Of a DNA stretch of 64,000 bases, positions 2,352 to 42,748 are shown in pieces. Location of the stretch: contig CM059427.1 in the NCBI GenBank assembly GCA_030390025.1, positions 186,744,001 through 186,808,000 on the forward strand, read 5' to 3'. How positions within the stretch are numbered: the stretch's first letter is position 1; each line of letters begins with the position of its first letter. Made by a program: the position numbers and the translations under genes. The notes beneath the pieces were generated by a model. That model searched no databases and was not told where the DNA came from. It saw nothing but the letters and a program-made list of their open reading frames with translations. The stretch comes from Squalus acanthias. Its lineage: Eukaryota.

Positions 2352-2450
2352 GTTTGGGAAATCAAAGACAGAAACCTCTGCAACCAGGAGAAAATATAGA
2401 AGATGCATCTCAGCTTTACTCAAATGCTAATGAAATACAGCAAATCCAAG
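2352..2450 (+). CDS. Gene A cytoplasmic exon 1 (YxN motif): (G)LGNQRQKPLQPGENIEDASQLYSNANEIQQIQ
   Basis: Acceptor tgaacag|, donor CAAG|gtaata, 99 bp, phase 1-1, open frame, joins in frame to the next exon. Confidence 0.75.
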
Positions 2451-2879
2451 GTAATATTTAAATACTAATAACATAGTAGGAGTTTTACAAGTGCTCTGCT
2501 CCATTTGTTCATGGCTATTATGAATCCCCTTTGTAATTTTCAGTTACACTTAAAAGACACTCAAACACGGAAATGTTGTGTTTTTATTCTGTCACATCCA
2601 AAAACCTGTTGAAGCTCATTCATTGAAAGTATTTGGAACTCAAGACTGGGAATTAATCTGGAACCTTCTACACTGTAGTTCAATATTATTTTATGTCATG
2701 ATGTGATTTCAACTATTTGTCATATTTCATATAACTTTGCAGGGTTACGGGGAAAGGGCGGGGGAGTGGGACTCGCTGAAGTGCTCTTGCAGAGAGCTGG
2801 CACGGGCTCGACGGGCCGAATGGCCTCCTTCCATGCTGTAACCATTCTATGATTCTATGATTCTATATGCATGGCATTT

Positions 2880-3290
2880 TACAACAACAACTTGTATTTA
2901 TATAGCGCATGTAACATAGTAAAACATCCCAAGGCACTTCACAGGAGTCTTATCAAACAAAATTTGACACCGAGCCACATAAGGAGATATAGGGCAGAAA
3001 AAAGGTAGGTTTTAAGGAGCGTCTTGCAGGAGCAAAGGGAGGCAGAGAGGCGGAGAGGATTAGAGAGGGAATTGTAGAGCTTAGGGCCTTGGCAGCTGAA
3101 GGCACGGCCGCCAATGGTGGAGCGATTAAAATAGGGGATGCTCAAGAGTCCAGAATTGGAGGAGTGCAGAGATCCTGGAGGGTTGTAGGGCTGGAGGGGA
3201 TTACAGAGATAGGGAGGGGCGAGGCCATGGAGGGATTGAAAACAAGGAAGAGAATTGTAAAATCAAGGCATTACTTAACCAGGAGCCAAT
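2880..3290 (-). mobile_element. L2 LINE 3' end
   Basis: GGRAFS...PKLYNSL...KTLLKTYLF and (CAA)n tail; homologous to 14800-15850. Confidence 0.85.
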
Positions 3291-3771
3291 TTAGCCCATT
3301 TTAACATATTCTGATCTTCATTTGGAGACTTTCAAACCATTAACATTAATAAAACACATCACACAACAACAGCTTGTGCTCCTTTAAATCTCACTTATCG
3401 TGTTATAGTTTGCTGTGTCTCCCAATTCACAGTCTGATTAATAGTTGCATTTTGAGTCCTTAACACTTCCCCTCTAAAAGAGAGCTCACACATTTCCTCA
3501 GATATCACCCTACAACCATTAGATTCCTCCAACACACATCACAAATACTCCAGTGTTTCTAAAACCACTCGAGACAACTAGTGCCAAAGATTCAGAACGT
3601 CATGAACATCTTTTTTAGACATTAATGTTTCCTCTGAAGGACTGATCCCACTTTCCTGATCATTCGAATATAACTCATTAGCAATGGAGCAGTTTTTGTA
3701 TAAATGCCTGATACAGCTTTTTGAAAATCAGACCATGCTAACGTCTTAATTGGAAAAATATTTTTTCCCAG

Positions 3772-3849
3772 GAGATAATGAGATGCCGGTGCCTGAGACA
3801 AGTAGATTTTCTGAATATGCAACTGTCAGTAAAAAGACAAAAGAAGACG
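3772..3849 (+). CDS. Gene A cytoplasmic exon 2 (ITIM SEYATV): GDNEMPVPETSRFSEYATVSKKTKED
   Basis: Acceptor ttttttcccag|, donor GACG|gtaagg, 78 bp, phase 1-1, open frame. Confidence 0.8.
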
Positions 3850-4222
3850 GTAAGGAGATGAATCATATTATGTGGCTCTATCAGTGGAGGTATTGTTAAC
3901 ATAGAACGTGTCAGATTTCATTGAGTTAAACTGTTGGTTCTGGTTTAAAACTTTGGCTCGGAAGCTCTTCAGAGAGGCAATGATAAATTCTGAGATATTT
4001 TAACAATCTTTAGTAAAATAGATCTTTGTGATGCTGGTCCAATATAAAAAGCTTCAAGCACAATAGAGCAACCTATTTATTCAGTCAGTTTAGTCATTGT
4101 GTAGATCACAAGTTTGCAATAGGAATGGCTGTTTAGAAATAATATGAATCACTAAAACAAAGTAAACAAGTAGCAACAAGTGCGAATGTCAGGATCACGC
4201 TGGGCTTTGTGACTCCACATGA

Positions 4223-7200
4223 TCATAGAAACATAAAAACATAGAAAATAGGTGCAGGAGTAGACCATTCGGTCCTTCGAGCCTGCACCGCCATTCAATG
4301 CGTTCATGGCTGAACATGCTACCTCAGTACCCCATTCCTGCTTTCTCGCCATACCCCTTGATCCCCCTAGTTGTGAGTATTATATCTAACTCCCTTTTGA
4401 ATATATTTAGCGAACTGGCCTCAACAGCCTTCTGTGGTAGAGAATTCCACAGATTCACCACTCTCTGGGTGAAGAAGTTCCTCCTCATCTCAGTCTTAAA
4501 TGGCTTCCCCTTTATCCTTGGACTGTGACCCCTGGTTTTAGTTTTCCCTAACATTGGAAACATTCTGCCCGCATCTAATTTGTCTAAACCAGTCAGGATT
4601 TTAAACGTCTCTATAAGATCCCCCCTCATTCTTCTGAACTCCAGAGGATACAAGTTCAGTTGATCCAGTCTTTCTTGATATGTCAGTCTGGCCATCCCAG
4701 GAATCAATCTAGTGAACCTTCGTTGCACTCCCTCAATAGCAAGAATGTCCTTCCTCAAGTTAGGAGACCAAAACTGCACACAATACTCCAGGTGTGGCCT
4801 CACCAAGGCCCTGTACAACTGTAGCATCACCTCCCTACTCCTGTACTCAAATCCCCTTACTATGAAGGCCATCATGCCATTTGCTTTCTTGACTGCCTGC
4901 TGCACTTGCCTTCCCACCTTCAGTGACTGATGTACCATGACGCCCAGGTCTCGTTGCACCTCCCCTTTCCCTAATCTGCCACCATTCAGGTAATAGTCTG
5001 CCTCCCTATTTTTACCACCAAAGTGGATAACCTCATATTTATCCACATTGTACTTCATCTGCCATACATTTGCCCATTCACCTAACCTGTCCAAGTCACT
5101 CTGTAGCCTCCTAGCATCCTCCTCATTGTTCACACTGCCTCCCAATTTAGTGTCATCCGCAAATTTGGAGATATTACAATTAATCCCTTCGTCCAAATCA
5201 TTAATATATAATGTAAACAGCTGGGGCCCCAGCACCGAACCCTGCGGTACCCCGCTGGTCACTGCCTGCCATTCTGAAAAGTACCCATTTACTCCTACTC
5301 TTTGTTTCCTGTGTGCCAACCAGTTCTCAATCCATGTCAACACATTACCCCCAATCCCATGGGGGAAAAATTCAGCTGCTTGCGCCTCCCGTTAGCGCCT
5401 TAAGAGGGCGCTAATGGGGCGTAAAGCAGCTAACGCCCGGGCGCAGCGCCGCCCACGCCTCCCGAAAAATTTAGTGGGAGGTTAGCGGCGGCGGCAGCCG
5501 GTAGCGCCCTGTGGCGCTGCGCCGCCGGCGATGACGTCATCGCCGTGCGCAGCACCCCGCTCGCGCCCCGGCCGTGATCTTCAGTCGCGCCCCCTGATTT
5601 ACCGCCAGACGCTATGTCTGACGGGTTCAGGGAGGCGTACGTGCGGCCGGGGCGGCGATATTTAAAGCGGAGGTGGCAGGCGGCCATTTTTGTTGCTGGC
5701 CGCCTGCCAGCACCTGCCCCCGGCCCCCGTGAAGCCCCCCCACCGTGAAGTGCCGGCTGCGCTCCAAGAGCCCGGCACTTCTCTTGAGTGCCGGGCTCTT
5801 TTGCCGGCACTCCCGATCCCTGGGGGCCCAGCTGGGCCCCGGTTCGCGCTGCGCAGGGTCCCTCCCCTTTAAGAAGGGGAGGAAGGCCTGCAATACCGCG
5901 GCGCGACGTGCCACAGCGCGTGGCGCTGCGGCACGTAGCGCCAGGATATTCACTCGCAGCGCCCCAAGAGGGATGCGGGCTGCTTCCAGTTGCGCCCCGC
6001 TTCCCTCTTGGGGCGTAACCACTGAAGTTCCGGCGCGGGGCCGCTAATTTTTTCGGGGCGCTAAAAGTCACGCCCCGGCGAGGTTAGCGCCCCAAATGGG
6101 GCGCGACTCAATTTTTACCCCCATGTGTTTTAACTTTGCACACCAATCTCTTGTGTGGGACCTTGTCGAAGGCCTTCTGAAAGTCCAAATACACCACATC
6201 TACTGGTTCCCCCCCGTCCACCCTATTGGAAACATCCTCAAAAAATTCCAGAAGATTTGTCAAGCATGATTTCCCTATCACAAATCCATACTGACTTGGA
6301 CCTATCATGTCGCCACTTTCCAAATGGTCTGTTATGACATCTTTAATAATTGTTTCCATCATTTTACCCACCACCGATGTCAGGCTGACCGGTCTATAAT
6401 TCCCTGCTTTCTCCCTCCCTCCTTTTTTAAAAAGAGGGGTTACATTAGCCACCCTCCACTCCTTCGGAACTGATCCAGAGTCTAAGGAATGTTGGAAAAT
6501 GATCGTCAATGCATCCACTATTTCCAAGGCCACCTCCTTAAGTACTCTGGGATGCAGACCATCAGGCCCTGGGGATTTATCAGCCTTCAGTCCCATCAAT
6601 TTCCCCAACACCTTTTCCCGACTGATAAGGATTTCCCTCAGCTCCTCCTTCTTACCAGATCCTTTGATCTCTTTTATTTCCAGAAGGTTGTTTGTGTCCT
6701 CCACAGTAAACACCGAACCAAAGTACTTGTTCAATTGATCTGCCATTTCTTTGTTCCCCATTATGACTTCCCCTGTTTCTGACTGCAGGGGACCTACGTT
6801 TGTTTTTACTAACCTCTTTCTTTTTACATATTTATAGAAGATTTTGCAGTCCGTTTTAATGTTCTCCGCAAGCTTCCTTTCATATTTTATTTTCCCTGCC
6901 CTAATCAAACCCTTCGTCCTCCTCTGCTGAGTTTTAAAGTTCTCCCAGTCCCCGGGTTTGCTGCTACTTCTGGCCAATTTGTATGCCACTTCCTTGCTTT
7001 TAATACTATCCTTGATTTCCCTTGTTAGCCATGGTTGAGCCACCTTCCCTTTTTTATTTTTACGCCAGACAGGGATGTACAATTGCTGTAGTTCATCCAT
7101 GCGATCTCTAAATGTCTGCCATTGCCCTTCCACTGATAACCCCTTAAATATCGCTTGCCAATCTAACCTCGCCAATTCACGCCTCATACCCTCAAAGTTG

Positions 7201-7730
7201 CCCTTATTTAAGTTCTGGACCATGGTCTCTGAATTAACTGTTTCCTTCTCCATCCTAATGTAGAACTCCACCATACTATGGTCACTCTTCCCCAAGGGGC
7301 CTCACACCACAAGATTGCTGATTAGTCCTTCCTCATTACACAACACCCAGTCCAGGATGGCCTCCCCTCTAGTTGGTTCCTCAACATATTGGTTTAGGAA
7401 ACCATCCCTTAAACACTCCAGGAAATTCTCCTCCACCGTATTGCTTCCAGTTTGAGTAGCCCAATCTATATGCATATTAAAGTCACCCATGATAACTGCT
7501 GCGCCTTTTTTGCATGCACCTCTGATTTCCTGTTTCATACCCTCCGCCACCTCACTACTACTGTTTGGAGGTCTGTACACAACCCCCACTAACGTTTTCT
7601 GCCCTTTGGTGTTCTGCAGCTCAACCCATATTGATTCCACATCCTCCAAGCTAATGTCCTTCCTAGCTATTGCATTAATCTCCTTTTTAACCAGCAATGC
7701 TACCCCACCCCCTTTTCCTTTTATTCTATC
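4223..7730 (-). mobile_element. Young 5'-truncated CR1 LINE (APE endonuclease + RT), split by a MITE
   Basis: ORFs 7302-7697 (GVVYRPP, MGDFN), 6108-7295 and 4324-5343 ([17 protein letters not shown]); (CATAGAAA)n tail at 4223. Confidence 0.95.
5361..6122. mobile_element. GC-rich ~760 bp MITE (PIF/Harbinger-like) inserted in CR1 ORF2
   Basis: TIRs GGGGGAAAAATTCA / TCAATTTTTACCCCC; 3-bp TSD (CAT or ATG), confirmed against the uninterrupted CR1 sequence at ~50470-50500. Confidence 0.85.
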
Positions 7731-7974
7731 ATATAGCTTCCCAACACTTCATATCCAGGCTCACAGATGAAGATACAATATTTGAGTTAGTTACTGGAGG
7801 ACTGTCAGTACTTGTGGAACCAAAACCTCGTGAGAGTCAGGAGAGGTGGGAGAAAAGAGAATAAAGAGTAAGGTTGGAAAAGATATAATGATCAGCGAGC
7901 TATGTTTTTAATTTACATTATTTAATAAATCTGCACCAATAGATGTACGATGTTGATGCTCCAATTTATGAGTC

Positions 7975-8320: not shown

Positions 8321-8329
8321 AGGCACTAA

Positions 8330-8935: not shown

Positions 8936-8992
8936 ACACAGAAAGAGAAGATATTCATTACGGATCTATCGTTTTTCAGAAAAAAGCACCAG
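8936..8992 (+). CDS. Gene A cytoplasmic exon 3 (ITIM-like IHYGSI): DTEREDIHYGSIVFQKKAP
   Basis: Acceptor tcttattctctgcag|, donor CCAG|gtagtg, 57 bp, phase 1-1. Confidence 0.8.
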
Positions 8993-11175
8993 GTAGTGAA
9001 AACTAACATTTTTCTTTTTTTTTCATTGTTGTGTTCATCCAGGTGAGGAATGTTAGTGCTGGGTAAAAAAACTCATTATATTTAGGCACCTAATGTCAGC
9101 ATCAGGCACTCCTCGGGTAAAGCTCCTCATACTCTGCCCTGTCAAAATGCCCCATCGCCAACCTCAGAAGGGCACCAGTGGGCCATTTTTCCATTTGCCA
9201 CACACACACATCTTGTGCCCTCTCTGAGTGAAATTGCCAATAATGTTGAATTAAGAAAGTATTGTGCTGCAGGTCTGTTCCTAGTAGGAACTGCTCTGAG
9301 ACTGTAGAACTAGAAACAACAAATATTAACGTACCTCAACAGTAAGACACAGTATTGTGGTGACTACGGTACAGGACTAAAAACCGGAAAGTCAGGATTT
9401 CCAACCCTACCGTGGTATGCAGTGAAACCGAATCTTTTAAACCTCATAATTTGTGGCCAGCACCAGGGAACTCTAGATAATTGGGTTTACTAATGTCCTT
9501 CAGGGAAATGCACTTGTCTTGTCGCTTAAGTTGGACTCTAAACCACACTTGCTCTCTGAAGTATACAACTGCTTCAAGAAGAATGTCCACGGCCGCCTTA
9601 GGGCAACTGGGGATGGGCATTAAATGTGATTCTGATCAGGGTCAGCCACATCCTGAGAATAAACATATAAAATGGTGTAGGATGGCGAAGGGCCCTTTTA
9701 GATCAGTGCATTCTCCTGCACAGACAATAAAGCACGGTAACTGTTGGCGACATTGTATACTTTATTAATAGAATCGGTAGTGTCTTTCCAATTGGAATTT
9801 TTTCCAGAAAAAAAGGTGACTTGATAGACAACCTCTGTATTTATAACTAATTTTGAACAAAAGGTTGACGTTATTGGCAATATGGAACCATAGTAAGTGG
9901 AAATCATCTGACATTCTTGAATGATGTCACACCAAATATTGCACATGTGGCGTAGAACTTGATTCAGCCTTCTGAGGGCCAGCTCGGCTTAGGGGTCGCC
10001 CTCTCACCTCTGAGAAAGAAGGTCATGGGTTCACGCCTTGCTTGCTGCAATCTATGCAGAGGGACTGTTGCATTGTTGGAGGCCTAGAACAATGACTAAA
10101 CTATAAAAGTGTTTCATTTGCTTTGGGATGTCCTGAGGATGTGAAAGGCACGATGAAAAATTCTTCCCAAGTTGATATAAGTAAAGCTGATTTTCCTATC
10201 AGAAGCTAGAAAACACTTATTCCCTGGGCCTTAATGATAGGAAAAAGGGGTGGTGATCTGTGACATGGGACCTCCATCCCTTTTATGTTGCCTGCATGCT
10301 TCAATGGAGATACGATTGGAGGAGCAGTTCCCACTTCCTCCAGCCTCACTTTCCTGTGGTTTCATCTGAAGAGCACCCACTTCCAACAGCACCTCAATGA
10401 GCTCGCAGTGGGTCATGCAATCTCCCAACCATCATGGAAGCCTGAACTAAGCCTTGTGACTGATGGTCAACAGCCAGAACGCCCTGAGACCGGTGGCCCA
10501 TCCCACGGTTGCAGGTCCTCTCAGGCCTGCAGATGTGGTTTGTATTCTGTCCGTTTCCCAGGGGACGGCTCTTCTAGGAAGTGGGCCTGCAACAGTAGTT
10601 CAATCAGACCATGCTAATGACCTGACCAACCAGATTAAGACAATCTGAGGCCTGGACAGGCAGATCCCTCTTTGAGTCTGCTCCACCTGTGCAGCACCCG
10701 GGCAAGGAGGGACCAGGAGAATCAAGCACGACATCTAATATAGCATAAATTGTAAATGGGGTTTTATTAAAGATTATTGGGAAAAGGCAGGGAAATGGGA
10801 TTAGAATAGGGGGCTGCAGTTGAACAGCTAGCACCAACCTAGCTACAATGGGCCAAATGGCCTCTTGCTGTGCTGTAATTTCTTTGCTTTCTAACACTGC
10901 AGCAGCAATGAAACTCTCAAACTCTGCAGAGTTGTGTAAGGAGCTTTGTTCATTTATGACCATCCTGTGGCTCACTGTGTAAATGCAGTGCTTAGTGTGG
11001 ATCTGAGTCATACAGAGGCCAACTGGGTTCACCGTCAATCAATGTCTTGCTGATCCATTGGCTGTACCAGTGAAATGCAGTAAATTGCGGACATTTGTAT
11101 GCCAATTGTCAGGTTTTTTTGTCAGTCCGATCCATTAAAGTTATCCTTTAATTGTGATGTTTGCAATTATCACAG

Positions 11176-11359: not shown

Positions 11360-11431
11360 AACCTGGCTCCTTCAAAGGAAGATGATTCATCTGTCATCTA
11401 TGCACAAATAGCGCAATCAAAATATAAATGA
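11360..11431 (+). CDS. Gene A terminal exon (ITIM VIYAQI): NLAPSKEDDSSVIYAQIAQSKYK*
   Basis: Acceptor tttctctcttgcag|, phase 0, TGA at 11429-11431, followed by an AT-rich 3' UTR. Confidence 0.82.
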   Translation, partial: NLAPSKEDDSSVIYAQIAQSKYK

Positions 11432-27505: not shown

Positions 27506-27775
27506 TTGAGTCAAGTCCACAGAGTGCTGTGGTGGGCAGTGACGTTACACACAGCTGTACCATCTCCAAACTCTCAGATACAGTCAGTCTTCAATGGAAA
27601 CAGAGAGACTCATCTGAGCAGAACAGGAGGAACACTGATCAGATCCGACTAAATAACACAGTCTATCTGATAGTCAAACATGTAGCAGTAGAGGATAAGG
27701 AGTTGTACGCGTGTGAAGTGCAGGAAGATGGATCCATTATTCTCCCTGGAAATGTAGATTTTTCTGTGGCCCAGG
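27506..27775 (+). CDS. Gene B Ig D2, C2-type
   Basis: Acceptor tttttcacag|, donor CAGG|gtaagt, 270 bp; VGSDVTHSC...LQWKQ...LIVKHV...DKELYACEV. Confidence 0.9.
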
Positions 27776-28195: not shown

Positions 28196-28286
28196 TGGAG
28201 TAGAAGATAAGAATTTGCATTTGTGTGAAGTGCAGAAAAAAGACTCTGTTATTAAAATAGCATCAAAACTATTGGTGTGGATCAGG
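28196..28286 (+). pseudogene. Relic 3' half of a third D2/D4-type C2 exon
   Basis: GVEDKNLHLCEVQKKDSVI...ggtgtggatcagg|gtaggg aligns to the ends of D2 and D4; downstream intron (cagtagatattaaatagttactgaaata) also duplicated. Confidence 0.7.
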
Positions 28287-28454
28287 GTAGGGCCAGAACT
28301 ACCTTACAGTAGATATTAAATAGTTACTGAAATAACACTGTTACACACAAAGTACAGGGAGCACAGAGACAGCATATGCTTTTACTACAGACTGGGACCT
28401 TATTTTCTCTCGGGAACATTGGTGTAAATATAACATTGCAATACAGTGTGAATG

Positions 28455-31400: not shown

Positions 31401-31637
31401 AAGTTCCCCTCCAAGTCACACGCCATCCTGACTTGGAAGTATATCGCCGATCCTTCATCGTGGCTGGGTCAAAATCCTGGAACTCCCTACCTAACAGCAC
31501 TGTGGGAGTACCTTCACCACACGGACCACACAGGTTCAAGAAGGCGGCTTACCACCACTTTCTCAAGGGCAATTAGGGATGGGCAATAAACGTTGGCCCT
31601 GCCAGCGACGCCCACATCCCGTGAATGAAAAAAAAAC
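28455..31637 (+). mobile_element. Near full-length CR1-like LINE (APE-RT, frameshifted) with tRNA-like 5' head
   Basis: PDIVILTES, TTYRPP, VGDFN, LDLVLTN..SDH (APE); NYRPISLLS, QFGFR, GVPQGSVLG, FADD (RT); A-rich tail at ~31630. Confidence 0.92.
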
Positions 31638-32646: not shown

Positions 32647-33878
32647 AACTCGAGGCTGCAGAGCCACTGGCCTGCATTGTAATATATGTAGATTAACTCA
32701 TTTGGGAACTCCACTGGCAGATAATGGGAAGTGACAAAATGTCCCAGGGGATTCAGGAGCATTGATTTTAACGGGAAAAACAAAGGAAACAGCTTCTTCC
32801 CAACTTTGATCTAAAAAAAGTTACACTGCGAGTGCGGAATTGCTGAATTTAGTCAGTGAGCACTTGAGGTCCCTTTCAGGTACAAATCTCTTCATGTTCA
32901 GAATTCTGTAAGCTGCAACTGGAAAAAGCAGAGACAATGCCACCCTGGAGCCAAGCCGAGCATCCACATATGTGAGTTTGTGAACATGCAGTGTGCAGAT
33001 AACTTGTGTTGGCAGCATGCTCGATGTGCATTTAGATGTGCAATGTTAATGGGCATTTGGAAAGTGGGCGAACAGCTGCCAGAGATCTTTGCAATTTCCC
33101 ACCTTGATGCTCCTTCAAGCTTGCAGTGAAGTGCTGATAGCCTGCATTGTAAAAGTAAGATTGCAAAAGGAGGCAAAGTGTGCGCAGGTTTATCTTAGCA
33201 ACCCTTGGGAGATCAGCAAATGTCTCCCTCATCTACTCCTCGATTGCTAAGCAGTGTGTAAGATGGGGGAGAGGAGGGAGCAGAGGAGGCAGAGGCTGCC
33301 TTGATTTTGGACAAAACAGTCCATGAACTCTTTGGCTGGAAGTTTGTGGCTGTCCGTGCGGTGCGATTGGAGGCGGGTCAGGAGTGAAAGTTGAAATAAC
33401 TTGGAGCTGGTCGGGAACCCGCCGTCATCCTGCCTCTACGCACCTTTCCCTCTGCCACGTTTGCCAGCGCGGCAGCGACCCTAACGACAGAGGCAGCCGA
33501 GCTAATTTAGATGATTATTAGTACTTGTCAGACCCTTAATTGTCTTTTTAACCCTACCTATCAAATGTCCCTGGATGAACACGGGAATCACGCAGCTCGG
33601 GAACCACCTCTGTGAACCTGAGGCGGAAGTTCAGTGGCCATTGATCCAGCTCATTAGTGCACAGCATGAAAAGCACAATAAATACTCCCACCTGACATCT
33701 CGTTACTTTACTAGGGCAGGTGCTATTGCTGAGTGCATTGTCAGCACAGATTTAGCTTTCCAGAGGTTGCAAGTGTTTTCTGCAAAGTTGGGATCCACTG
33801 TCACCTCATTGATAGCATCTATCACACCATTGACAGATTGCTTCTGTCATCTCTACTGACCTGCCATCTATTACATAA

Positions 33879-33986
33879 GCCTCCGCAGCACATGAACTAA
33901 AGTTAGGAAAGATACAGAGTAGATTAGCATGGCACCTGCACAAGGACGACACGCAAATTCGTGAAACGTTCCCTTTAAAAAAAAAA
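33879..33986 (+). pseudogene. RNU6: U6 snRNA processed pseudogene with poly(A)
   Basis: gcagcacatgaactaaagttaggaaagatacagagtagattagcatggcacctgcacaaggacgacacgcaaattcgtgaaacgttcc matches U6 with several substitutions, followed by A10. Confidence 0.9.
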
Positions 33987-33987
33987 T

Positions 33988-34375
33988 GGGCAACACGGTG
34001 GCATAGTGGTTAGCACTGGTGCCTCACAGCGCCAGAGACCCGGGTTCGAATCTGACCTCGGGTGACTGTCTGTGTGGAGTTTGCACATTCTCCCCGTGTC
34101 TGCGTGGGTTTCCTCCGGGTGCTCCGGTTTCCTCCCACAGTCCAAAAATGTGTGGGTTAGGTTGATTTGGCTATGATAAATTGACCCTTAGTGTTAGGGG
34201 GAATTAAATACGTGGGGTTACGGGGGTAGGGTGGGATATGTGTACTGTGGGGATTAAAGCAGGGACAGGGTACTGGATTTGGATGATCAGCCATGATCGT
34301 ATTGAATGGCGGAGCAGGCTCGACGGGCCGAATGGCCTACTCCTGCTCCTAGATTCTATGTTTCTATGTTTCTAT
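33988..34375 (+). mobile_element. V-SINE (HE1-like): tRNA head, V-domain, CR1-derived tail
   Basis: A/B boxes (tagtggttag, ggttcgaatc), gtgtggagtttgcacattctccccgtg core, CR1 3' end with (TTTCTATG)n. Confidence 0.9.
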
Positions 34376-36045
34376 GGGTGCCGTTTATACTGTCTCACCT
34401 TGGTCCTCAGAATTGGACCACGATGAGCCCCAACACCAGCAGCACCAACAATCACACCAGCAGCACCAACAATCACACCAGCAACCTTCCCCTCACCAAC
34501 CTGATGCTGCACAGGACAGAGGGCATCAGAGCTGCAATACGCCGGAGACGATACCCACAACACAGGGTATACAGGCAGAGGATGAGCTTCCTCAACATGA
34601 CTGAGCAGCAGTGCCAAAGGAGGCTCAAGCTATCACGGCAGGTCATCGCAGACATTTGCAGATTGCTGGGGAAAACCTGCAGCCCCGAGGAGCGGGTGGA
34701 CATGCCTTACCAGTGGCTGTCAAAGTCACCAGCGTCCTCAACTTCTTCACCTCAGGCTCCTTCCAGGGATCTGCAGCAGACATTTGCGGCATCTCACAGT
34801 TGGCCGCCCACAGATGCATCACACAGGGCACCGATGCCCTGTTTGACAAGTCAGCCAATTATATCAACTTTGCCAGTGATGAAGCCAGTGTTACTGAGCG
34901 GGCGCTCGGCATCGCCACTTTGGCTGGCTTCCCACGTGTGCAAGGCATCATCAGCTACACACATGTGGCCATTAGGTCACCCCATCATCGCCTCTGTGCA
35001 GTCATGTTTCTAAGTGTTTGGAACACTCCAATGCTGCAGTACAGAGCCTGCACAATCCTAGATGAACCTTGAAATACAAAGTGGCCATGGCTCCTTTAAA
35101 TATCCCGGCTGAAAACACGTCCTCGATGACGCCATCAGACCTGCACCATTTAATAGGGCCGGGTAACGCACAGGGGGGCTTAATAGACGCCATTAAGGGA
35201 AAGTCGATCTCAGGAGAGGAATGGAATGTGAACGGGGTCGCGACCTGCCATGACGACCGCCCCCACCCGACCCGCCCAGGTACAGAAAATTCCAGCCTTT
35301 GCATTTGCCTTTGCCTTTGCATCTGGAGGGTAAGAAAGTCCATCTAAAGTTCTGGAGCTTTCCTCTGCCCTTGTTACATGATCAGACTAGATACCTGTGA
35401 AAATGGAAAAAATAAACCAGGATGAAAAAGGCAGCTGGTTGTATCCAAATATATATTTCCTTCCTCTTCCTTATCTATCTTGGTGACATCATGCGCAGGT
35501 TCAGGGTTCAACTTGTTGTTGAGAACACTCAGCTCTCCCTCTCCACCATTTCCCATAACCCCCATGACTACCTTTGGTCTTCAGCCTTCAGCCACAGTCT
35601 GAAATTACCACTAAATATCTCCACCTCTCCATTTCTCCGTGCCCCTTTAAAAACATTCTCCAAACACATTTTTTTTCGATGTTCAGTCATATCTCCTAAC
35701 TTTCACATCATTGCTTATTGTCTTTTGATCCTTTTACCTATTTCCCCCTCTGTGTAAACAGTCTTGGAAGGTGTTCTTCATCAAAAGTGCAATAGAAATA
35801 TAAGTTTTTGTTAAACATTTGAAGGTTAAGAAGCTATTTGAGAAACAATGATCCATTATTATAAGTGTATCTATAGGAAAGTGTCTTTCTTCTTTACAAC
35901 TGTGTGTGAATGTGTTGTGTCACTACTGAAATGAATTATAACTAACAGCTTAATGAAAACAAATTGTCTGCAGTATTAATAATTACACAGATCGGATTGA
36001 GAAGTTGCTGTCTGATTTAAAAATGTTGGTTCTCCTTTCTTGCAG

Positions 36046-36391
36046 GAAACCAGAATTGTATTTATTTTTTCCATCAGGAAGGCAGCATTGTATTGAAAGG
36101 ACCAGACATTCCTGGAAATGGCTCCATTGTCTGGGAATGGAGACCACACTCAGGGCAACAAACTACAAAGCAATTGGGAACTTTTTCACAGAGAAGATCA
36201 GCGGTGGGCGGTACAATGGAGCGAGGAGTACAATAATATACCAGGCATTTCTCAGAGGATACGTGAGGACTGGGGAACCCTTAATCTGAGAATCAGAAAC
36301 CCCACCTTTGAACTTGCGAGATTGTTCACCTGGACTCAGACACAGCCCAGCAAGAAAATCCTGAAACAGTATGAAATATTTGGGATCAAAG
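36046..36391 (+). pseudogene. Gene B Ig D3, V-like paralog of D1; +1 frameshift at the T5 run 36182-36186
   Basis: Acceptor cctttcttgcag|, donor AAAG|gtaagt, 346 bp (3n+1); IVWEWRPHSG...NLRIRNPTFELARLF...QYEIFGIK; as written, stop TAA at 36234-36236. Confidence 0.85.
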
Positions 36392-36599
36392 GTAAGTAGC
36401 ACAACAAATGGAAAGGATTCAATCATCTGATTTTTTTGTGAGTAATTCCACAAATATTCCGAACAGAATGTTGGGATGATGTCCTGATCCTCCAGTTCTA
36501 TCACTCAGCCCAGAATGAATCTCTCATTAAAAGCAGCCAGGTGGGTAAAATTCCTCTGTGCATTAGAACTAGTGGATGCACTAAGGGCTAGTAATTTTG

Positions 36600-37225
36600 G
36601 TAGTTAGCACTAGCATGTTGTTGCAATTTTTGTCCATCCTCCTAAAATTCCTGAGTCAATGGCCTTGGAGGAGGATGGAGCGGGTGGCGATGGTATGGAA
36701 TTCGTGGCGAGGGTTGAAGACGATGGCTTCAGTCTCCCAAATATTTAACTGGAGGAAATTGCAGCTCATCCAAGACTAGATGTTAGACAAGTGATCTGAC
36801 AGCACAAAGGCAGTGGAGGGATTGAGAGTGGTGGTGGAGAGTTAGAGCTCGGTGTCGTGAATATACATGTGGAGCTGACCCATTGTCTTTGGATGATGTT
36901 TAGCTGGAAGTAGGTGATCTTTGTGATGGAGACGATATGGGGTCAGAAGCTTAGCCGAGGGCTAAAGAGTCTGCTTCAACCTGAGACAATGGCCAGGGAG
37001 AGAGATGTAGCTGCTTGTGATGTATGGAGTTCGTGGGGAGGGCTGAAGAAGATGGCTTCGGTCTTCATATATTTAACTGGAGGAAATTACAGCTCATCCA
37101 AGACTAGATGTTAGGCAAGTGATCTGACAGCACAGAGGCAGTGGAGGGATAGAGAGAAGTGGTGGAAAGGTAGAGCTGTGTTTCATCAACACAGATGTGC
37201 AAGCTGAGCAAATGTCTTAAGATGA
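36600..37225 (-). mobile_element. Tandemly duplicated L2 fragments
   Basis: Two copies of gatggcttc...atatttaactggaggaaatt...cagctcatccaagactagatgttag. Confidence 0.7.
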
Positions 37226-37227
37226 TG

Positions 37228-37675
37228 ATTTACTAGAATGGTACCAGGGGGATGAGGGTCTTCTGTTATGTGGAGAGATTGGAGAAGCTGGGGCAGAGAA
37301 GGTTAAGAGGAGATTTGATGGAGCGGTTCAAAATCATGAATGGTTTTGATAGAGTAAATAATGAGAAACTGATTCCAGTGGCAAAAGGGTCGGTAACCAG
37401 GGAAGACAGATTTAAGGTGATTGGCGACCAGATTCAGCATGAGGAAACATTCTTTTACACAGCGAGTTGTTGTGATCCCGAATCCACTGCCTGAAAGGGT
37501 GGTGGAAGCAGATTCAAGAGTAACTTTCAAAAGAGAATTGGTAAATACTTGAAGGGAAAATATTTACAGGATATGGGGAAAGAGCAGGGGAGAGGAACTA
37601 ATTGGATAGCTCTAGCAAAGAGCCGGCACAGACACGATGCACCGAATAGCCTCCTTCTGTGCTGTATCATTCTAT
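37228..37675 (+). mobile_element. CR1 3' fragment
   Basis: ERLEKLG..RRLRGDL..FKIMNGFDRV plus CR1 3' UTR. Confidence 0.85.
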
Positions 37676-37676
37676 G

Positions 37677-38271
37677 GGCCTGAAATTTGGCCCCTTAGCG
37701 CCAGCTGTTTAGGCCGGTTTTGTGGAAAAAATGTCACTCGCCTCACTTCTGCCTATTGGTGAAGCAGGTGTTAGGCTATTAACATATTCAAAGAAGGGGC
37801 CTAACGCCTGCTTCTGCTCCCTCTTGCAAATTTACTTGCATCTGTGACAGTCAGTGCCAGCAATGTTTACTCCCGGGAAAACAAACATTAAACAGTGCCG
37901 AATGAAAAAAAGTGAAGTACTTACCATTGGCATCTCCGACCTCACCCCCGACTCCAGCCTCCAGGCCCTCTCTGATCTCCCCACAATGCGGCCCCGACCT
38001 CCAGGTCCCCCCGATGGCCCCGACCTCCCCCCGATGTTGTCCCCGAGACCCGATCACCCCCCTCCGATCCTGGCCCCGTGTCCCGACCTACCTCAGCGTC
38101 CTTGCTGGGTGTTCAGACACTCAGCGCGTTCAGTGCTGGGCTGAACGCCACAATAAGGATAATCAGCCGGCGGAAACAAGTCCCGGTGCTGCCTGCGATC
38201 TTTTTACGGGTGTGAGCAAACCTCGCCCCGCGGAGCCACTCCCGTTTACGGCATTATCGGATTTCTAGGCC
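37677..38271. mobile_element. Harbinger-type non-autonomous element
   Basis: TIR-like GGCCTGAAATTT / GGATTTCTAGGCC; homologous to 8330-8890. Confidence 0.75.
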
Positions 38272-38491
38272 AAAGATTCTATGTTGCCGAGGAGCAGCAT
38301 GTAGATGAGGAAGATGAGGGAGCCAAGGGGGACAAGTGACCATTAACTGGGAAATGTTCATAGTCAGCACTAAGCACGGCTGCTCAGCATTTGTCTGACT
38401 GTGTCTGTTTGTAGGAAAAGAAAATTCTGAATGCAATAGTTCAGAGAGTTTATGGAAAGCTATTCTGCACGTCATTGATCTGTTTTTACAG

Positions 38492-38764
38492 TTGAGACAG
38501 ATTCCCAGAGGCCTGTAATGGGCAGTGACATCACCCTCAGTTGTACCGTCTCCAGACTCTCAGATACAGTCAGTCTTCACTGGAAACCAAGAGACTCATC
38601 TCAGCAGAACAGGAGGAACAACACTGATGAGATCCATCTGAATAACACGGTTTATCTGATAGTCAGACACGTTGGAGCAGAAAATCAGGATTTGTACACA
38701 TGGGAAGTGCAGGAAAATGACTCCATTGTTCTCACTGGAAACACAAATGTTGATGTGGATCAGA
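38492..38764 (+). CDS. Gene B Ig D4, C2-type paralog of D2 (F-strand Cys->Trp)
   Basis: Acceptor tgtttttacag|, donor CAGA|gtaagt, 273 bp; GSDITLSC...LHWKP...LYTWEV versus LYACEV in D2. Confidence 0.85.
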
Positions 38765-39507: not shown

Positions 39508-41556
39508 CGATGCGGTCTCCTCTACATTTGGGAGACCAAACGTAGATAGGGTGACCGCTTTGCGGAACACCTCCGTTCAGTCCGTAAGCATGACCCTGAG
39601 CTTTCGGTCGCCTGTCACTTTAATTCTCCGCTCCACTCCCACTCTGAGCTCTCTGTCCTCGGCCTCTTACACTGTTCCAACGAAGCTCAATGTAAGCTCG
39701 AGGAACAGCACCTCATCTTTCGATTAGGCACTTTACAGCCCTCTGGACTTAACATTGAGTTCAACAATTTCAGACCATAACCTCGGCCACTATTTTTTTT
39801 TCCTCACATGTTAGCTGTTGATGATTCTTCCATCACCATTTACACCTCATCTAGAGTCATCCTGTAAAATTCGCAATTATCACGATTCGAAATAACGAGA
39901 TAAAGCAGATTTGTTTCATCAGTTTTATTTCAACGAAATGCTGTCATGATTAAACAGGACACAGAAGCCTGTAAAATGGCCGCCGAGCCTCGTGGCAGAA
40001 GCTTCCAGAATTTTCAGTGGGCAGACAAGATGGCGTTCGAATAAACATTTCAGTATAAGATTGGATAATACTCAGCAAACACTGATAAAGACAGGATGCA
40101 ACCTGTCTGCATTCGACACAATAGCAAGAGATAAGTGCTGGAATCGTTTTCCATGCACAAGTAAGGACCATTGTACTGGGCAATCGAAGGCCCATCCAGA
40201 TACATCAATCCACAACTACCCCCACGGCTCTACAATGAGAGAGCCATTCACGGGTGATTAAGTCAGTATTCGAGGAGGCCCCAAAACCAGTCAGGGAGAC
40301 TCCTAGCCGGTTCGACAATGGGGAAAACATTAACGGGTAGTTGACCAGTTTAAGGTGCTACCGAAACCCATTAAAGGAAAGAATCGCCCCATGCTGGGAG
40401 TTTTGTGCACCAGTATTACACAAAGGACAAACATTAAGATTTAAGCGGGAGATAAGGGAACCCAGCACTATAACTATAGACAACAAATGTCCATCGGTCT
40501 CTTGATTCGACTCTTGACTCGGGCTGAACTCTTGCTTATGTCTCTTATCTGGCTGATGACTGCTGAACTCTTATTCGCTTGCCGCTTCATGGACTCGCTT
40601 GACTGGTGAGCTTTTGATTGTCTCTCTCTGGACTTCTACAACCGTGTCTGAGCACTGTCGAGTTCTTCATGACAATGGGGAGCCCAGCCTGCTTGCCGGA
40701 GCAGCGAAGATAAACAAGTGGGATACAGAGACCCCTTCCAACACGTGACAGTCAGGTGTTGCAGCAAAACAAGCCGAGTGCCTCGTTTAAAATTCTCCGA
40801 AGTATCACGAGTGGTGAGCATGTTTCCTCGATCCTACAAATCTAGATTAGTGTAGGTATTAATAGGGGAGGGTGGTTTTATTAAGGATAAATATAATGTG
40901 TTCCCCTTTTTACGATGTGCCGTGCGATCCTCATTACCCTGGACCAAGTTTTATGAATGTATGTATACTTGTACTGTCATTAATTTGTGCCTATGACATG
41001 TACTTCATGATTTTGGACGTTATGCAATAAAGGTTTCCATTTCGTACTATTCAACCGGGTCTATTTGAGTTTTCTCTGCATTGCTGCTCTCGCACCTAAG
41101 TCCAGTGTTAGAACCGTAAGGGCGAGTGGGTCGAACCACTCACAGGTGCTTATTGCAACAAGGCTGGCCGGAGACCAGAGCAAGCAATAGTATTAGGCAA
41201 CGAAGGCCTAACCCCGCACAAGCACCCTGAACCCGAACTCCTTACATCCTTTGTTTCTTAACTTGTCCCATTACCTCTCCTTTCGCCTTGCACCATCATC
41301 CCTTTTGTCTTTTAATCTCTTCCGCCCTCCAGCCTATCACAGACATTCCCTTTTGTACTTTCCTCCCTGTCCCTGTCCCTGCCCCACACTTACTTAAAAA
41401 TCTGTTACTTCTCTGAACTTTTCCAGTTCTGACGAAGGGTCCTCGACCCGAAACGTTAGTTCTGTTTCTCTCTGTCGATGCTGTCTGAGCTGCTGAGTGT
41501 TTCCAGCATTTTCTGTTGTTATTTCAGATTTCCAGCATCCGCAGTATTTTGCTATT
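39508..41556 (+). mobile_element. Penelope-like element 3' part (GIY-YIG relic), interrupted by a solo LTR
   Basis: CGLLYI-GETKR..GDRFAEHLRSVRK at ~39510-39590; resumes at 41247 and ends with a hammerhead-like terminal region. Confidence 0.85.
39863..41246 (+). mobile_element. Solo LTR, family 1
   Basis: TGTAAAATTCGC...CTCCTTACA, AATAAA near 41026, flanks ATCC/TCCT (imperfect TSD); colinear with the reverse complement of 56402-58491. Confidence 0.85.
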
Positions 41557-42062
41557 AACTCCTAACGACCCCCCTACATGTTAAACCTCTGAGCCTGTCC
41601 CAAGCTTGCCCTTGCAACATTCTGTTTCCAGCCTGACTGACATTGCATCATTTGATTGAGCTCTCTGCCTGCCCATGTTTCTCTCTCTATATTACCGTCT
41701 TCTGTTAACAACCCGAGGGAACCAAAGATGCCGATCACAATGGGTATGAGGCATTTATTGATAACTGATTGCTGAGACAGTTTAACAAATTGATTATCTA
41801 CAGTCCACGGGGAAACAACATCACTTTGACGGGGGCCATGTTTGGGGCAGATGGACTTTGTCGCACAACCCGGCGTTTAAACAATAGGCAGCCTGGGCCG
41901 GCAGCCAGTGTATCCGGGTCCCAGCTGATTTCCCTGTCCCAATGCTGCACTCCCAGCTGGCTTATGCCAGGAGGGCACTGAATGGCCCTGTGGGAATTCA
42001 GAACATCTGTATCTCAGCAGCTATATAAATCTAACACCTTGTTTCCTGTCTCTCTATTTCAG

Positions 42063-42400
42063 ATTTATGCAATAAGAGATACACACTCTTTGGTCGGACA
42101 CAGATCACAGTGAACTCTCCCTGATTTGTGAAGCTGAATCTGAGATCATTAAAACTAAATGGACTTGGAGGTCACGTCATTTTCAGAATCAAGAGAAAGA
42201 AATAGCTTCTACTTTCAGATCTAAGCCTATCGATGTAAACAGGACCTACTTTGGGAGTCGACTGGTGCCCACAGTGGGAAATGTCAATGGCAAGAACTTC
42301 AGTGTGAGGATTGTCCCCGTACTGTTTGAAGATGCAGGAGTTTACACATGTTCTCTGGGGTTATTTAATTATGTGACCATTAAACTAATCACAGTTAAAG
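42063..42400 (+). pseudogene. Gene B Ig D5, canonical V domain; apparent -1 frameshift near 42090
   Basis: Strong acceptor tctctctatttcag|, donor AAAG|gtagga, 338 bp (3n+2); ELSLIC...KWTWRS...FGSRL...NFSVRIVPVLFEDAGVYTC...LITVK. Confidence 0.85.
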
Positions 42401-42478
42401 GTAGGAGACAGAATGCTGCCGTTGTTTTCAATGATAAAGTTATTGTTTAAAATCTAACTGATTTTCTTGTTTACACAG

Positions 42479-42748
42479 TCACAGCTGAACCATCTGATGC
42501 AGTGACTGAGGGAGACACCGTTACCCTGACCTGCTCTGTCTCTGATGCCACTGAATCAATGAGACTTGTTTGGATCAGTAGCGATGGCAAAACTGTTGAG
42601 GAGAAAACTTTTAAGGACCAGAAGCAGGAAGAGGATTTGTTACGGCTGATTATTCAGAAAGCCAATAGAGACAGAAGGAACTGGACATGTGTTTTGTTTC
42701 ATCAAAACACACCCAGCGTTTTAATTCCATATTATCTGAAGGTTAACA
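42479..42748 (+). CDS. Gene B Ig D6, C2-type with WxC motif
   Basis: 78-bp intron; acceptor tgtttacacag|, donor AACA|gtaagt, 270 bp; EGDTVTLTC...LVW...LIIQKA...NWTCVL. Confidence 0.9.

Follow-up and report, generated by a model that had tools for sequence, protein, structure and literature searches.

The analyzed window, the whole stretch of 64,000 nucleotides of Squalus acanthias DNA, is very probably part of a large tandem cluster of unnamed immunoglobulin (Ig)-superfamily surface receptors, to which gene A contributes a "brake" tail and in which gene B is broken as assembled. The family occurs in cartilaginous fish and in early-branching ray-finned fish.

Extent and Domain Architecture of the Family

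The searches found 111 family proteins in 22 cartilaginous-fish species; sturgeon, paddlefish, bichir, and eel have related proteins. The search with the A2 profile gave 114 matches at E ≤ 0.01, 111 of them family members, and the search with P0005 gave 78 proteins at E ≤ 1e-5. The original prediction that the two genes are paralogous members of an expanded receptor family, distinct from CD4 and LAG-3, was supported. The linkage of the Ig ectodomain to the tail was likewise confirmed: in P0010, P0017, P0004, and P0049, the domains of the window are joined in one protein to its tail type (YSN / EY / IHYxSI / VIYAQI).

Almost all family proteins are labelled "uncharacterized" at their source, and a nurse shark cDNA product of the family was deposited as an "obscurin-like protein". 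As to the family being "not CHARACTERISED", the literature search gave no paper on it. Two papers credit Venkatesh et al. 2014 with the finding of "several CD4/LAG3-like molecules" in cartilaginous fish.

The ectodomain would be built from a four-part unit, used once, twice, or sometimes more, in which a V-like domain without cysteines (WxW) comes first, a C2 domain (YxC) second, a V domain third, and the WxC-bearing C2 domain last. The V-C2 cassette assumed previously to be the repeat gave way to a unit of four domains, which is single in 57 of the 152 family proteins and doubled, giving eight domains, in 28/152. The WxC motif was present in 183/186 C2 domains of the last type and in 0/183 of the first C2 type.

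Tail Exons of Gene A

Gene A is represented in the window by the following exons:

2352-2450, + strand: tail exon t1, length 99 nt, phase 1 at both ends, AG/GTAATA borders
3772-3849, + strand: tail exon t2, length 78 nt, phase 1 at both ends, AG/GT borders, SEYATV
8936-9042, + strand: tail exon t3 in its long form, length 107 nt, phase 1 at the start and 0 at the end, IHYGSI
11360-11431, + strand: tail exon t4, phase 0 acceptor, NLAPSKEDDSSVIYAQIAQSKYK followed by TGA, VIYAQI

The product of t1 (GLGNQRQ...LYSNA...IQQIQ) contains the YxN motif YSN, and SEYATV in t2 is an ITIM-type motif. The sevengill-shark homologue P0049 served as the reference for the tail-exon matches, and searches within the window aligned t1 with its residues 735-768 (88% identity, E 1.7e-12), t2 with residues 767-799 (E 3.7e-6), t3 with residues 793-815 (E 4.9e-6), and t4 with residues 827-849 (87% identity, E 1.65e-6). 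Exon t1 was also 100% identical to P0061/P0065 across 28 residues.

The long form of t3 carries an in-frame TAA at about 9004-9006, directly after ...KKAPGSEN, and the 3' third of the exon, read in all frames, showed no likeness to the homologues. An alternative earlier donor, GTAGTG at 8992/8993, leaves phase 1 and is mismatched to the phase of t4. Since the 107 nt form is the only one compatible with t4 and carries the TAA, VIYAQI lies outside the continuous reading frame as assembled. Gene A as assembled stops after the second ITIM, before the VIYAQI exon. The exons of the predicted YSN plus three-ITIM tail were confirmed on the + strand, but the inclusion of VIYAQI in a continuous frame was not. 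The share of gene A in the window would be the tail exons of one "brake" form and nothing else.

Leader and Ig Exons of Gene B

The features of gene B and the related copies are as follows:

23148 to about 23235, + strand: leader exon, degenerate, its end counted as 29 codons + 1 base to the donor GTAAAA
25173-25514, + strand: D1, putative V-like domain with VWEW, without a cysteine pair, 342 nt, intact
27506-27775, + strand: D2, C2/I-type Ig domain, C...W...YAC, 270 nt, intact
28197-28332, + strand: relic copy of the D2 3' end and the start of the D2 intron (tblastn)
36046-36391, + strand: D3, putative second-unit V-like domain with VWEW, without a cysteine pair, 346 nt (+1)
38492-38764, + strand: D4, second-unit C2 domain, 273 nt, intact
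42063-42400, + strand: D5, V domain, C...WTW...DAGVYTC, KWTW, 338 nt (-1)
42479-42748, + strand: D6, membrane-proximal C2 domain, LTC...LVW...NWTC, 270 nt, intact
63075-63417 and 63706-63968, + strand: copies of the first intron of gene B, 91% identical to 23751-24092 and 24134-24398 (blastn)

Codons 1-21 of the leader (MTLRFFCSKMPAGLMFSFFVF) match the homologue leaders, the identity to those of P0005, P0049, and P0061 being 81-90%; codons 22-29 are all changed, with TAG as codon 26 and the hydrophobic core replaced. The Ig exons D1, D2, D4, and D6 are open and have perfect AG/GT borders. The extra nucleotide of D3 sits in a stretch of five consecutive T (about 36183-36187), and the exon matches D1 and the homologues in two frames. 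D5 lost one base near 42090, where there is no homopolymer, and, read from the strong canonical acceptor, reaches TGA about 20 codons in. In the F strand of D4, YTW stands where YxC is expected; this domain is 95.6% identical to P0123, P0161, and P0162. Altogether, the six-domain ectodomain of the original prediction was recovered in its exons, WxW motifs (in the V types), and NWTC (in D6), but not in an open leader or in the frames of D3 and D5.

Pfam recognized Ig domains in four of the seven pieces (D2, D4, D5, and D6) and gave no match in D1 nor in either half of D3. For D2, both Ig_2 (E 4.8e-6) and I-set (E 3e-5) were over the cut-off, whereas Ig_3 (E 4.7e-6) scored 27.4 bits, below its cut-off of 30. 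D5 matched V-set (E 2e-4) and D6 matched ig (E 4.8e-8); residues 9-98 of D6 also aligned to the LAG-3 chain 7tzg_C (E 0.0064). A search of 1.84 billion representatives with D1 alone gave 35 relatives (E ≤ 1e-3), with no Pfam family and no PDB match; the D1-type profile gave nothing significant in PDB (best E 0.097). Judging by their sequence, D1 and D3 are probably V-like domains. In the tree, D3 and D4 were placed in second-unit clades (support 0.951 and 0.883, respectively), which identifies them at the sequence level as members of an ancient second unit and not products of a recent duplication.

The relic at 28197-28332 came to light through matches to residues 82-100 and 115-126 in the D2 piece, with a joint E of 0.003. 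The two intron blocks at 63075-63968 show where the next gene of the family has its 5' region, in agreement with the third copy noted to start at about 63 kb.

Predicted Paired Brake and Accelerator Forms

In the census of 152 family proteins, 60 had a plain membrane segment with an ITIM tail, 27 had a lysine in the membrane segment and a short tail, 26 had a membrane segment without an ITIM, and in 39 no membrane segment was found. The view of an inhibitory family was therefore correct as regards the existence of ITIM forms (60/152) but not as regards an exclusively inhibitory role, given the 27/152 proteins with the lysine. P0050, with an ITIM tail, is 97% identical over 85% of its length to P0005, with a lysine membrane segment, and both types occur in sturgeon (P0117 and P0118/P0119). 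YxN opens the tail in 35 of the 51 proteins classed as having a plain membrane segment and an ITIM tail, and YDN/YEN is kept in the ITIM-less members from sturgeon and bichir.

The members would form pairs with near-identical ectodomains. In the "brake" form, the membrane segment would be plain and the tail distributed over small exons with one tyrosine motif each, YxN coming first and up to three ITIMs following. In the "accelerator" form, the membrane segment would carry a central lysine, and the short tail would be free of tyrosine. From what is established for ITIM-bearing and paired receptors, we infer the signaling steps, partners, and ligands: ligand binding would bring the tail to Src-family kinases, the phosphorylated ITIMs would recruit SHP-1, SHP-2, or SHIP, and YxN would recruit Grb2. 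The lysine forms would pair with a DAP12-type adaptor, bearing an aspartate and an ITAM.

Status of Gene B

Gene B is not intact as assembled: the leader contains a stop, D3 has gained and D5 has lost one base, and exons are missing. Compared with the eight-domain layout, two exons are absent (V and WxC-C2 of the first unit), and the resulting Va-Ca-Va-Ca-Vb-Cb arrangement was found in 0/152 family proteins. Most likely, gene B is one of the cluster's pseudogenes or truncated copies, which would have derived from the eight-domain type by the loss of these two exons.

A doubtful alternative is that the living animal carries an intact gene B for a functional six-domain receptor; the lesions would then be faults of the assembly, and the exons for membrane and tail would lie elsewhere or be dispensable in a secreted form. 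The extra T of D3 was missing in all four public runs compared, at all depth available there, so this lesion, at least, may stem from a faulty assembly or reflect a private allele. RNA-like contigs from the public runs point in the same direction: a contig of run X8 joins 36389 to 38490, i.e., D3 spliced to D4, and contigs of runs X1 and X8 terminate at the D3 and D4 donors, which suggests transcription of gene B or of a near-identical gene. These contigs, however, differ by about 1-2% from the window, and their source may be a neighbouring paralogue or another animal. The open D1, D2, D4, and D6 with their perfect borders fit an intact gene as well, and a secreted form is possible in view of the 39/152 family models without a membrane segment, 18/152 finishing after the last C2. 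Against this stand the eight changed leader codons with TAG, which amount to more than a one-letter slip, the base loss in D5 outside any homopolymer, and the layout that no family protein shares. Moreover, protein, motif, and sensitive DNA searches traced no membrane or tail exon 3' of D6 between 42.7 and 63 kb. We keep to the reading of gene B as a pseudogene or truncated copy as the most likely one.

Relationship to Known Receptor Groups

The family is plausibly related, at a distance, to the group of CD4/LAG-3 and G6F-like and would be a member of neither. The kinship with CD4/LAG-3, as judged from sequence comparisons, is plausible but weak. When the family profile was run against PDB, three of the six best chains were LAG-3, and LAG-3 gave the best single stretch among the five alignments listed (23.5 bits, i-E 1.6e-4), which starts where the V domain ends and extends through C2, including WxC. 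CD4/LAG-3 and the family have in common the four-domain V-C2-V-C2 core and the strand-F WxC of the last C2 domain, a feature of C2 domains called "very unusual" in the literature. The family V domain (...FGIK) also passes without a linker into the next domain and may form a continuous V-to-C2 strand as in CD4. According to excerpts of PMC10768021, LAG-3 is itself inhibitory and bears an ITIM-like motif; the brake forms of the family carry ITIM-type tails. Unlike in CD4/LAG-3, WxC in the family is confined to one of its two C2 types, the first V-like domain lacks the disulfide and gave no relative in PDB or Pfam, and the tail, lacking both Cx(C/H) and (F/Y)xxL(D/E), is split over four small exons; the family also has many tandem copies, lysine-membrane partners, and doubled or multiplied units. 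The prediction of receptors related to, yet distinct from, CD4/LAG-3 stands in its second part, while the evidence for the first is weak.

It is rather improbable that the family represents G6F/G6f-like (LY6G6F) in cartilaginous fish, multiplied there and refitted with ITIM tails and lysine membrane segments, and is not kin of CD4/LAG-3 in particular. Ohashi and colleagues reportedly noted in 2010 that G6F-like resembles CD4/LAG-3. Going by descriptions and Atlas scores, G6f-like may be as near a lead as CD4/LAG-3. In the protein Atlas comparison of two family members, the nearest named clusters were "putative g6f-like" and "g6f-like isoform X9", at ranks 2 and 3 for P0062 (0.96) and ranks 1 and 2 for the sturgeon P0040 (0.97; 209 and 205 of 256 features shared), the cluster "Lymphocyte antigen 6 family member G6F" reaching 0.95. 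The Atlas, however, gives no alignment or E-value, CD4 clusters scored an equal 0.96, the structural TM-scores were only 0.35-0.38, and none of the 114 profile-search matches bore a g6f-like name. G6f-like, according to excerpts of PMC3528668, has four Ig domains, a single membrane segment, and a conserved YxN tail, in agreement with the YxN at the tail start of the brake forms and the YDN/YEN of the ITIM-less sturgeon and bichir members. The same excerpts present it as a collagen receptor of fish thrombocytes with its own ITAM and do not describe a paired multigene family, whereas the shark family is highly multiplied and has ITIM tails or lysine membrane segments.

Membership in SLAM/CD2 or CEACAM, groups with a cysteine-less first V domain, is very improbable. 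The disulfide is missing from the first domain of CD2/SLAM and from the CEACAM N domain, as it is from the first domain of the family, and VIYAQI is presumably similar to SLAM-type tyrosine motifs. In the profile search, carcinoembryonic antigen (CEA) had the best summed E (3.4e-11) and CEACAM1 was also present, but the CEA score is the sum of six weak stretches (top 13.7 bits, i-E 0.15), and CD2, CD48, CD58, CD84, SLAM, and 2B4 chains were all missing from the best 60 listed. The D1-only profile found no CD2, SLAM, or CEACAM N domain, its CEA match (E 0.41) falling in a C2 domain. The -2 residue of the family motifs is S, I, or V versus T in the ITSM; TxYxx[VI] was found in no tail among the listed family proteins with a membrane segment, and the few ITSM-pattern matches belonged to entries without a real membrane segment or to unrelated proteins.

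A true orthology of the genes to CD4 or LAG-3, or their origin as recent copies of these, is hardly credible and was disfavoured despite the shared core with WxC and the top single-stretch LAG-3 match among the alignments listed: shark CD4 (CxH tail) and LAG-3 (single-exon tail, (F/Y)xxL(D/E)) are already identified in the excerpted text of PMC10768021 and both tail motif sets are missing here, the tail has four small exons, the first C2 type never shows WxC, and dozens of copies per genome occur together with lysine membrane forms.

The family resembles KIR, LILR, SIRP, CD300, and the fish NITR and LITR in its organization, i.e., in near-identical ectodomains joined either to an ITIM tail or to a short tail behind a membrane segment with a charged residue, and in tandem clusters that include broken copies. 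It differs from them in its domain types and its four-domain unit. Fish DICP and skate MDIR follow the same paired ITIM/charged-membrane logic, with domain types other than those of the family.

Exon Anatomy and Surroundings

The window DNA is vertebrate and repeat-rich, with many LINE fragments besides two open reading frames (ORFs) matching RVT_1. Two groups of short exons, all with clean AG/GT borders, lie on the plus strand and belong to an upstream gene represented only by its tail exons (gene A) and the next gene (gene B). The exons of the original prediction were all present, so that its description of the anatomy was largely right.

Exons and reverse-transcriptase ORFs of the window
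2352-2450, plus strand, gene A tail exon t1 (..LYSNA..), phase 1 to 1
3772-3849, plus strand, gene A tail exon t2 (SEYATV), phase 1 to 1
6108-7295, minus strand, reverse-transcriptase ORF (RVT_1)
From 8936, plus strand, gene A tail exon t3 (IHYGSI)
11360-11431, plus strand, gene A tail exon t4 (VIYAQI, then TGA)
Start 23148, plus strand, gene B leader-like exon
25173-25514, plus strand, gene B D1, Ig-type exon, 342 nt
27506-27775, plus strand, gene B D2, Ig-type exon
30599-31576, plus strand, reverse-transcriptase ORF (RVT_1)
36046-36391, plus strand, gene B D3, Ig-type exon, 346 nt
38492-38764, plus strand, gene B D4, Ig-type exon
42063-42400, plus strand, gene B D5, Ig-type exon, 338 nt
42479-42748, plus strand, gene B D6, Ig-type exon

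Pfam called Ig domains in D2, D4, D5 and D6, and found no match in the D1 and D3 exon pieces. Both D1 and D3 have VWEW and lack the cysteine pair. D2 and D4, which share 64% identity, are C2/I-type domains of the ordinary kind. D5 belongs to the V type, with KWTW and the usual cysteines, and D6 is a C2 domain (LTC...LVW...NWTC).

Apart from family members, only LINE elements and a U6 copy were seen in the window. The latter, a full-length U6 snRNA match at 33877-33980 on the plus strand (69.5 bits against a gathering threshold of 44, E 1.7e-15), sits in the D2-D3 intron adjoining LINE sequence and may represent either a gene or a retro-copy of U6. A tandem array occupies 47154-47877 (42-bp unit, 17.2 copies, 94% matches), and the long open frames on both its strands are repeat artefacts. 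Proline-/serine-rich low-complexity open frames were noted at 34306-35013 (plus strand) and 18.3-19.0 kb. The product of the former had no Pfam match, the adjoining 33993-34367 recurs inverted at 57745-58159 (87%), and the region is probably an unclassified repeat.

A Large Family in Cartilaginous Fish and Beyond

The original prediction of an expanded receptor family was right, and the case is stronger than it had supposed. In searches made exon by exon, D1 alone, run against 1.84 billion representatives, matched 35 proteins at E<=1e-3, with E<=1e-30 for six. The four-domain sawshark homologue P0005 as query retrieved 78 proteins at E<=1e-5, and a 16-row profile run against 5.8 billion proteins gave 114 matches at E<=0.01, comprising 111 family proteins and three weak generic Ig hits. 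None of the profile matches bore the name CD4, LAG-3 or G6f-like. The closest relatives of the window exons were sawshark proteins (D4, 95.6% identity; second half of D3, 92.8%; t1, 100% over 28 residues). By source names, the cartilaginous-fish members span 22 species (sharks, rays, skates and chimaera), with relatives outside this group in sturgeons, paddlefish, bichirs and an eel.

Nearly all these proteins are named 'uncharacterized protein', a few bearing automatically assigned labels (CD276 homolog, VCAM1-like, obscurin-like). One, AGQ17915.1, is a deposited nurse shark product named 'obscurin-like protein', on which we found no paper. Pfam assigned the exon pieces and 28 family proteins to generic Ig families only; C2-set (CD2/CD4) touched three of 22 members, weakly, and SIT three of 22. 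Our literature search found no paper describing the family, though some members may stand in supplements outside that search. Two papers credit Venkatesh et al. 2014 with 'several CD4/LAG3-like molecules' in cartilaginous fish, which are not named in the accessible part of its main text. Some family molecules may have been seen in its supplement (Supplementary Note XI), and some may likewise appear in the supplementary files of Takizawa et al. 2023.

Ectodomain and Tail Form a Paired Receptor Layout

The original prediction could not join the tail to the ectodomain because they belong to separate genes in the window. Homologues now supply this link: in P0010, P0017, P0004 and P0049 the same Ig domains are followed by YSN or YLN, an EY motif, IHYxSI and VIYAQI. 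The window tail exons t1 to t4 matched the P0049 tail with E values of 1.7e-12, 3.7e-6, 4.9e-6 and 1.65e-6, respectively.

From 163 fetched proteins, 11 that were unrelated or weak (P0025, P0028-P0030, P0032-P0035 and P0153-P0155) were removed, and the remaining 152 entered a census. Classes were assigned by a hydropathy cut-off and regular expressions of our own making, applied to protein models of which some are partial.

Census of membrane segments and tails
Membrane segment and ITIM tail: 60/152
Lysine in the membrane segment (..YL(F/L)VKL..A.GLI..) and short tail without a tyrosine motif: 27/152
Membrane segment, no ITIM: 26/152
No membrane segment found: 39/152, of which 18 stop directly after the last C2

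The ITIM consensus (S/I/V/L)xYxx(I/V/L) was found in the tails of some members, IHYGSI (25) and VIYAQI (18) being the commonest forms. The 51 proteins classed as having a plain membrane segment with an ITIM tail carry one, two or three ITIMs in 12, 30 and 9 cases, respectively, and YxN, seen as YSN in t1 of the window, is present in 35 of them. In sawshark, P0050 (ITIM tail) and P0005 (membrane lysine) are 97% identical over 85% of their length and diverge only from the membrane onward. The tail of sturgeon P0117 contains YSN, LHYVTF and VVYSSI, while P0118 and P0119 of sturgeon have the membrane lysine; both kinds of receptor thus occur in sturgeon.

The family had been predicted to be inhibitory. 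This fits its ITIM-tail members, but the forms with lysine in the membrane make it a paired one; judged from the protein sequences, its layout is that of classical paired inhibitory/activating receptors. From this established receptor class we infer how the two forms would signal: Src kinases would phosphorylate the tail tyrosines, the ITIMs would recruit SHP-1, SHP-2 or SHIP and the YxN motif Grb2, and the membrane lysine would pair with a DAP12-type adaptor.

Several models vary at the C-terminal end. The nurse shark 'obscurin-like protein' P0133 ends after the membrane segment with ...FGKSKIEALATRGKCRRYISALFKY, which matches t1 in another frame (window 2340-2440, plus strand, ...FGKSKTETSATRRKYRRCISALLKC); this reflects either a cloning artefact or splicing that shifts the frame and deletes all tyrosine motifs. 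The sevengill shark model P0049 runs from a D6-type exon straight to t1 (..YYLKVNS-LENQRQ..), skipping the membrane exon. Since both junctions are phase 1 (compare 42748 and 2352 in the window), a membrane-less form with an ITIM tail is possible in frame. The 'Isoform X2' models P0047 and P0104, of basking shark and whale shark, have a short hydrophilic end after the last C2 (..KVNNIEQLESTQGDRK and ..KYNEIIQQESGQGNKK), which suggests a conserved, putatively secreted splice form in their subfamily. A tblastn search of the window with these two ends revealed no matching terminal exon, the best hit being on the wrong strand (E 0.47).

The Four-Domain Unit and the Origin of Gene B

Domains were cut with four HMMs built from alignment A1, corresponding to a cysteine-less V-like domain (Va), a first C2 type (Ca), a V domain (Vb) and a last C2 type (Cb). 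The order Va-Ca-Vb-Cb was found in 57 of the 152 proteins and the same unit doubled in 28, while the layout of the window, Va-Ca-Va-Ca-Vb-Cb, occurred in none. The American eel protein P0020 (2139 aa) is a model of about 20 domains of the same four types, so that the unit can multiply far beyond two.

Trees were built from proteins with exactly four or eight domains, using domains covering >=80% of the model (105 Va and 112 Ca sequences, with the window domains added). D3 fell in a clade of 30 (support 0.951) containing all 28 second-unit Va, and D4 in a clade of 31 (support 0.883) containing all 28 second-unit Ca; D1 and D2 grouped with first-unit domains and four-domain genes. We reject a recent duplication of a V-C2 cassette within the gene as the source of D1-D2 and D3-D4, since D3 and D4 join the second units of other species. 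The placement instead derives gene B from the eight-domain type, without the Vb and Cb exons of the first unit. Their place between D2 and D3 is taken by a LINE, the U6 copy and a short relic of the 3' end of D2.

Integrity of Genes A and B

Exon t4 requires a phase 0 junction, and the sole form of t3 that supplies one is 8936-9042. This form has an in-frame TAA (about 9004-9006) after ..KKAPGSEN, and its last third resembles no homologue. Hence, the gene A tail, as assembled, ends past its second ITIM, short of VIYAQI.

Gene B carries several lesions. Its leader exon is colinear with homologue leaders (29 codons and one base, then the donor GTAAAA), codons 22-29 are all changed and codon 26 is TAG. 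D3 has 346 nt against the 342 of D1, and its match to homologues switches frame at a run of five T (about 36183-36187). The first ten codons of D5 match homologues in the frame of the strong acceptor; this frame hits TGA about ten codons on, and the remainder of the domain lies in another frame. A membrane or tail exon of gene B was found between 42.7 and 63 kb neither by a hydrophobicity scan, tblastn of homologue segments at E 50 and motif patterns on both strands, nor by sensitive blastn with the gene A tail region.

Since no public run contained more than 0.48 of the words sampled from the window, the sample from which the window derives is probably not among them. The segment 36150-42140 was compared with four runs of one organism, two guessed to be RNA and two DNA, whose contigs are ~1-2% diverged from the window and give no expression levels. 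One letter was missing at 36182 in all four, each time in a single covering contig at full depth; these runs thus do not carry the D3 frameshift. A contig of run X8 joins 36389 to 38490, i.e., the D3-D4 splice, and contigs of X1 and X8 stop exactly at the D3 and D4 donors. These contigs indicate that transcripts with D3 in frame come from gene B, its orthologue or a nearly identical paralogue.

An assembly error may account for the T-run lesion, and we consider it fairly probable that gene B represents a truncated copy or a pseudogene. Of the six-domain receptor originally proposed, the exons stand, but the gene is broken as assembled, its layout was not seen in any of the family proteins, and it is probably dead or mis-assembled. 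A dead copy is ordinary in such clusters, and caution is due against inferring a six-domain receptor from this window.

Significance

Paired Ig receptors such as KIR, LILR, SIRP and CD300 are central to the control of mammalian innate cells and lymphocytes, and to our knowledge very little of this kind has been described for sharks. Here is a large family with the domain plan of CD4/LAG-3, whose conservation extends from chimaera to sturgeon, bichir and eel and whose tail is recognisable from sharks to sturgeon. Its sequences provide concrete candidates for regulatory receptors on shark leukocytes, a means of testing the origins of CD4, LAG-3 and G6F, and a natural case of receptor lengthening by whole four-domain units. 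A bolder reading, which we regard as improbable, takes the family as the surviving stock of an ancient paired V-C2-V-C2/WxC system predating the cartilaginous/bony split, with CD4 (activating), LAG-3 (inhibitory) and G6F as its single-copy offshoots. Were it true, the contrary signalling of CD4 and LAG-3 would be the relic of an activating/inhibitory pair, and family members might to this day recognise MHC class II-like molecules or related ligands.

Comparison with Known Receptors

CD4 and LAG-3 form a head-to-tail gene pair in a conserved genomic neighbourhood, and in both of them strand G of the V domain continues into strand A of the C2 domain to give rod-like pairs. In the family sequences, no linker separates the ...FGIK of the V domain from the next domain, and the V-C2-V-C2 ectodomain, single or doubled, is shared with CD4/LAG-3. 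A 22-row family profile run against 177,635 PDB sequences placed three LAG-3 chains in the best six, each as a single long stretch from V strands E-G through the whole C2 (18-23.5 bits, i-E 1.6e-4 to 7e-3); CEA, pIgR and VEGFR1 scored through the sum of weaker pieces. D6 alone aligned end to end with LAG-3 D2 (E 0.0064). Neither D1 alone nor a 13-row D1 profile had a significant PDB match (best profile E 0.097), and single-exon PDB searches with D2, D5 and D6 gave generic Ig matches only.

The WxC motif of strand F, called 'very unusual' and typical of D2 and D4 of CD4/LAG-3 by Takizawa et al. 2023 (PMC10768021), is likewise present in 183 of 186 family Cb domains. Unlike CD4/LAG-3, the family has it in none of 183 Ca domains; in the window, only D6 shows it (NWTC), D2 having YAC and D4 YTW. 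The same source gives Cx(C/H) for LCK in the CD4 tail and a single-exon LAG-3 tail with (F/Y)xxL(D/E). Neither motif was seen in the window tail or the homologue tails inspected, and the window tail differs in being spread over four exons with YSN, SEYATV, IHYGSI and VIYAQI. Shark CD4 and LAG-3 are, according to PMC10768021, already known as single genes with tails other than those of the family. We therefore reject a true CD4 or LAG-3 identity on the grounds of the different tail motifs, the Ca domains without WxC and the known shark genes.

G6f-like, a four-Ig fish receptor with a membrane segment, a conserved YxN tail and an ITAM (PMC3528668), resembles the family in its four Ig domains, membrane segment and YxN tail. 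YxN is the first motif of the family's tails, and is kept in sturgeon and bichir members without ITIMs. In the protein Atlas, 'g6f-like' clusters were nearest to two family members (0.96-0.97) and level with CD4 clusters, by feature scores. G6f-like has an ITAM of its own, split over two exons, whereas Yxx[LI]x6-8Yxx[LI] was not seen in the window tail or the homologue tails inspected. G6f-like kinship is taken here as a lead only.

Membership of the SLAM/CD2 group was rejected, as the ITSM TxYxx(V/I) was found in no tail of the listed family proteins with a membrane segment and no SLAM/CD2 chain appeared in the 60 best PDB chains or the 11 D1-profile matches. CEACAM membership was rejected because of the piecemeal origin of the CEA score, and no DICP name occurred among the names of the matches listed in the P0005 and profile searches.

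For the relation to CD4/LAG-3 originally proposed, the V-C2-V-C2 plan and the WxC of Cb speak in favour, the lack of WxC in Ca and of the tail motifs against. Altogether, evidence on both sides leads us to treat the family as a distant relative of CD4/LAG-3 rather than a member, a kinship which, on sequence grounds, is plausible but unproven.
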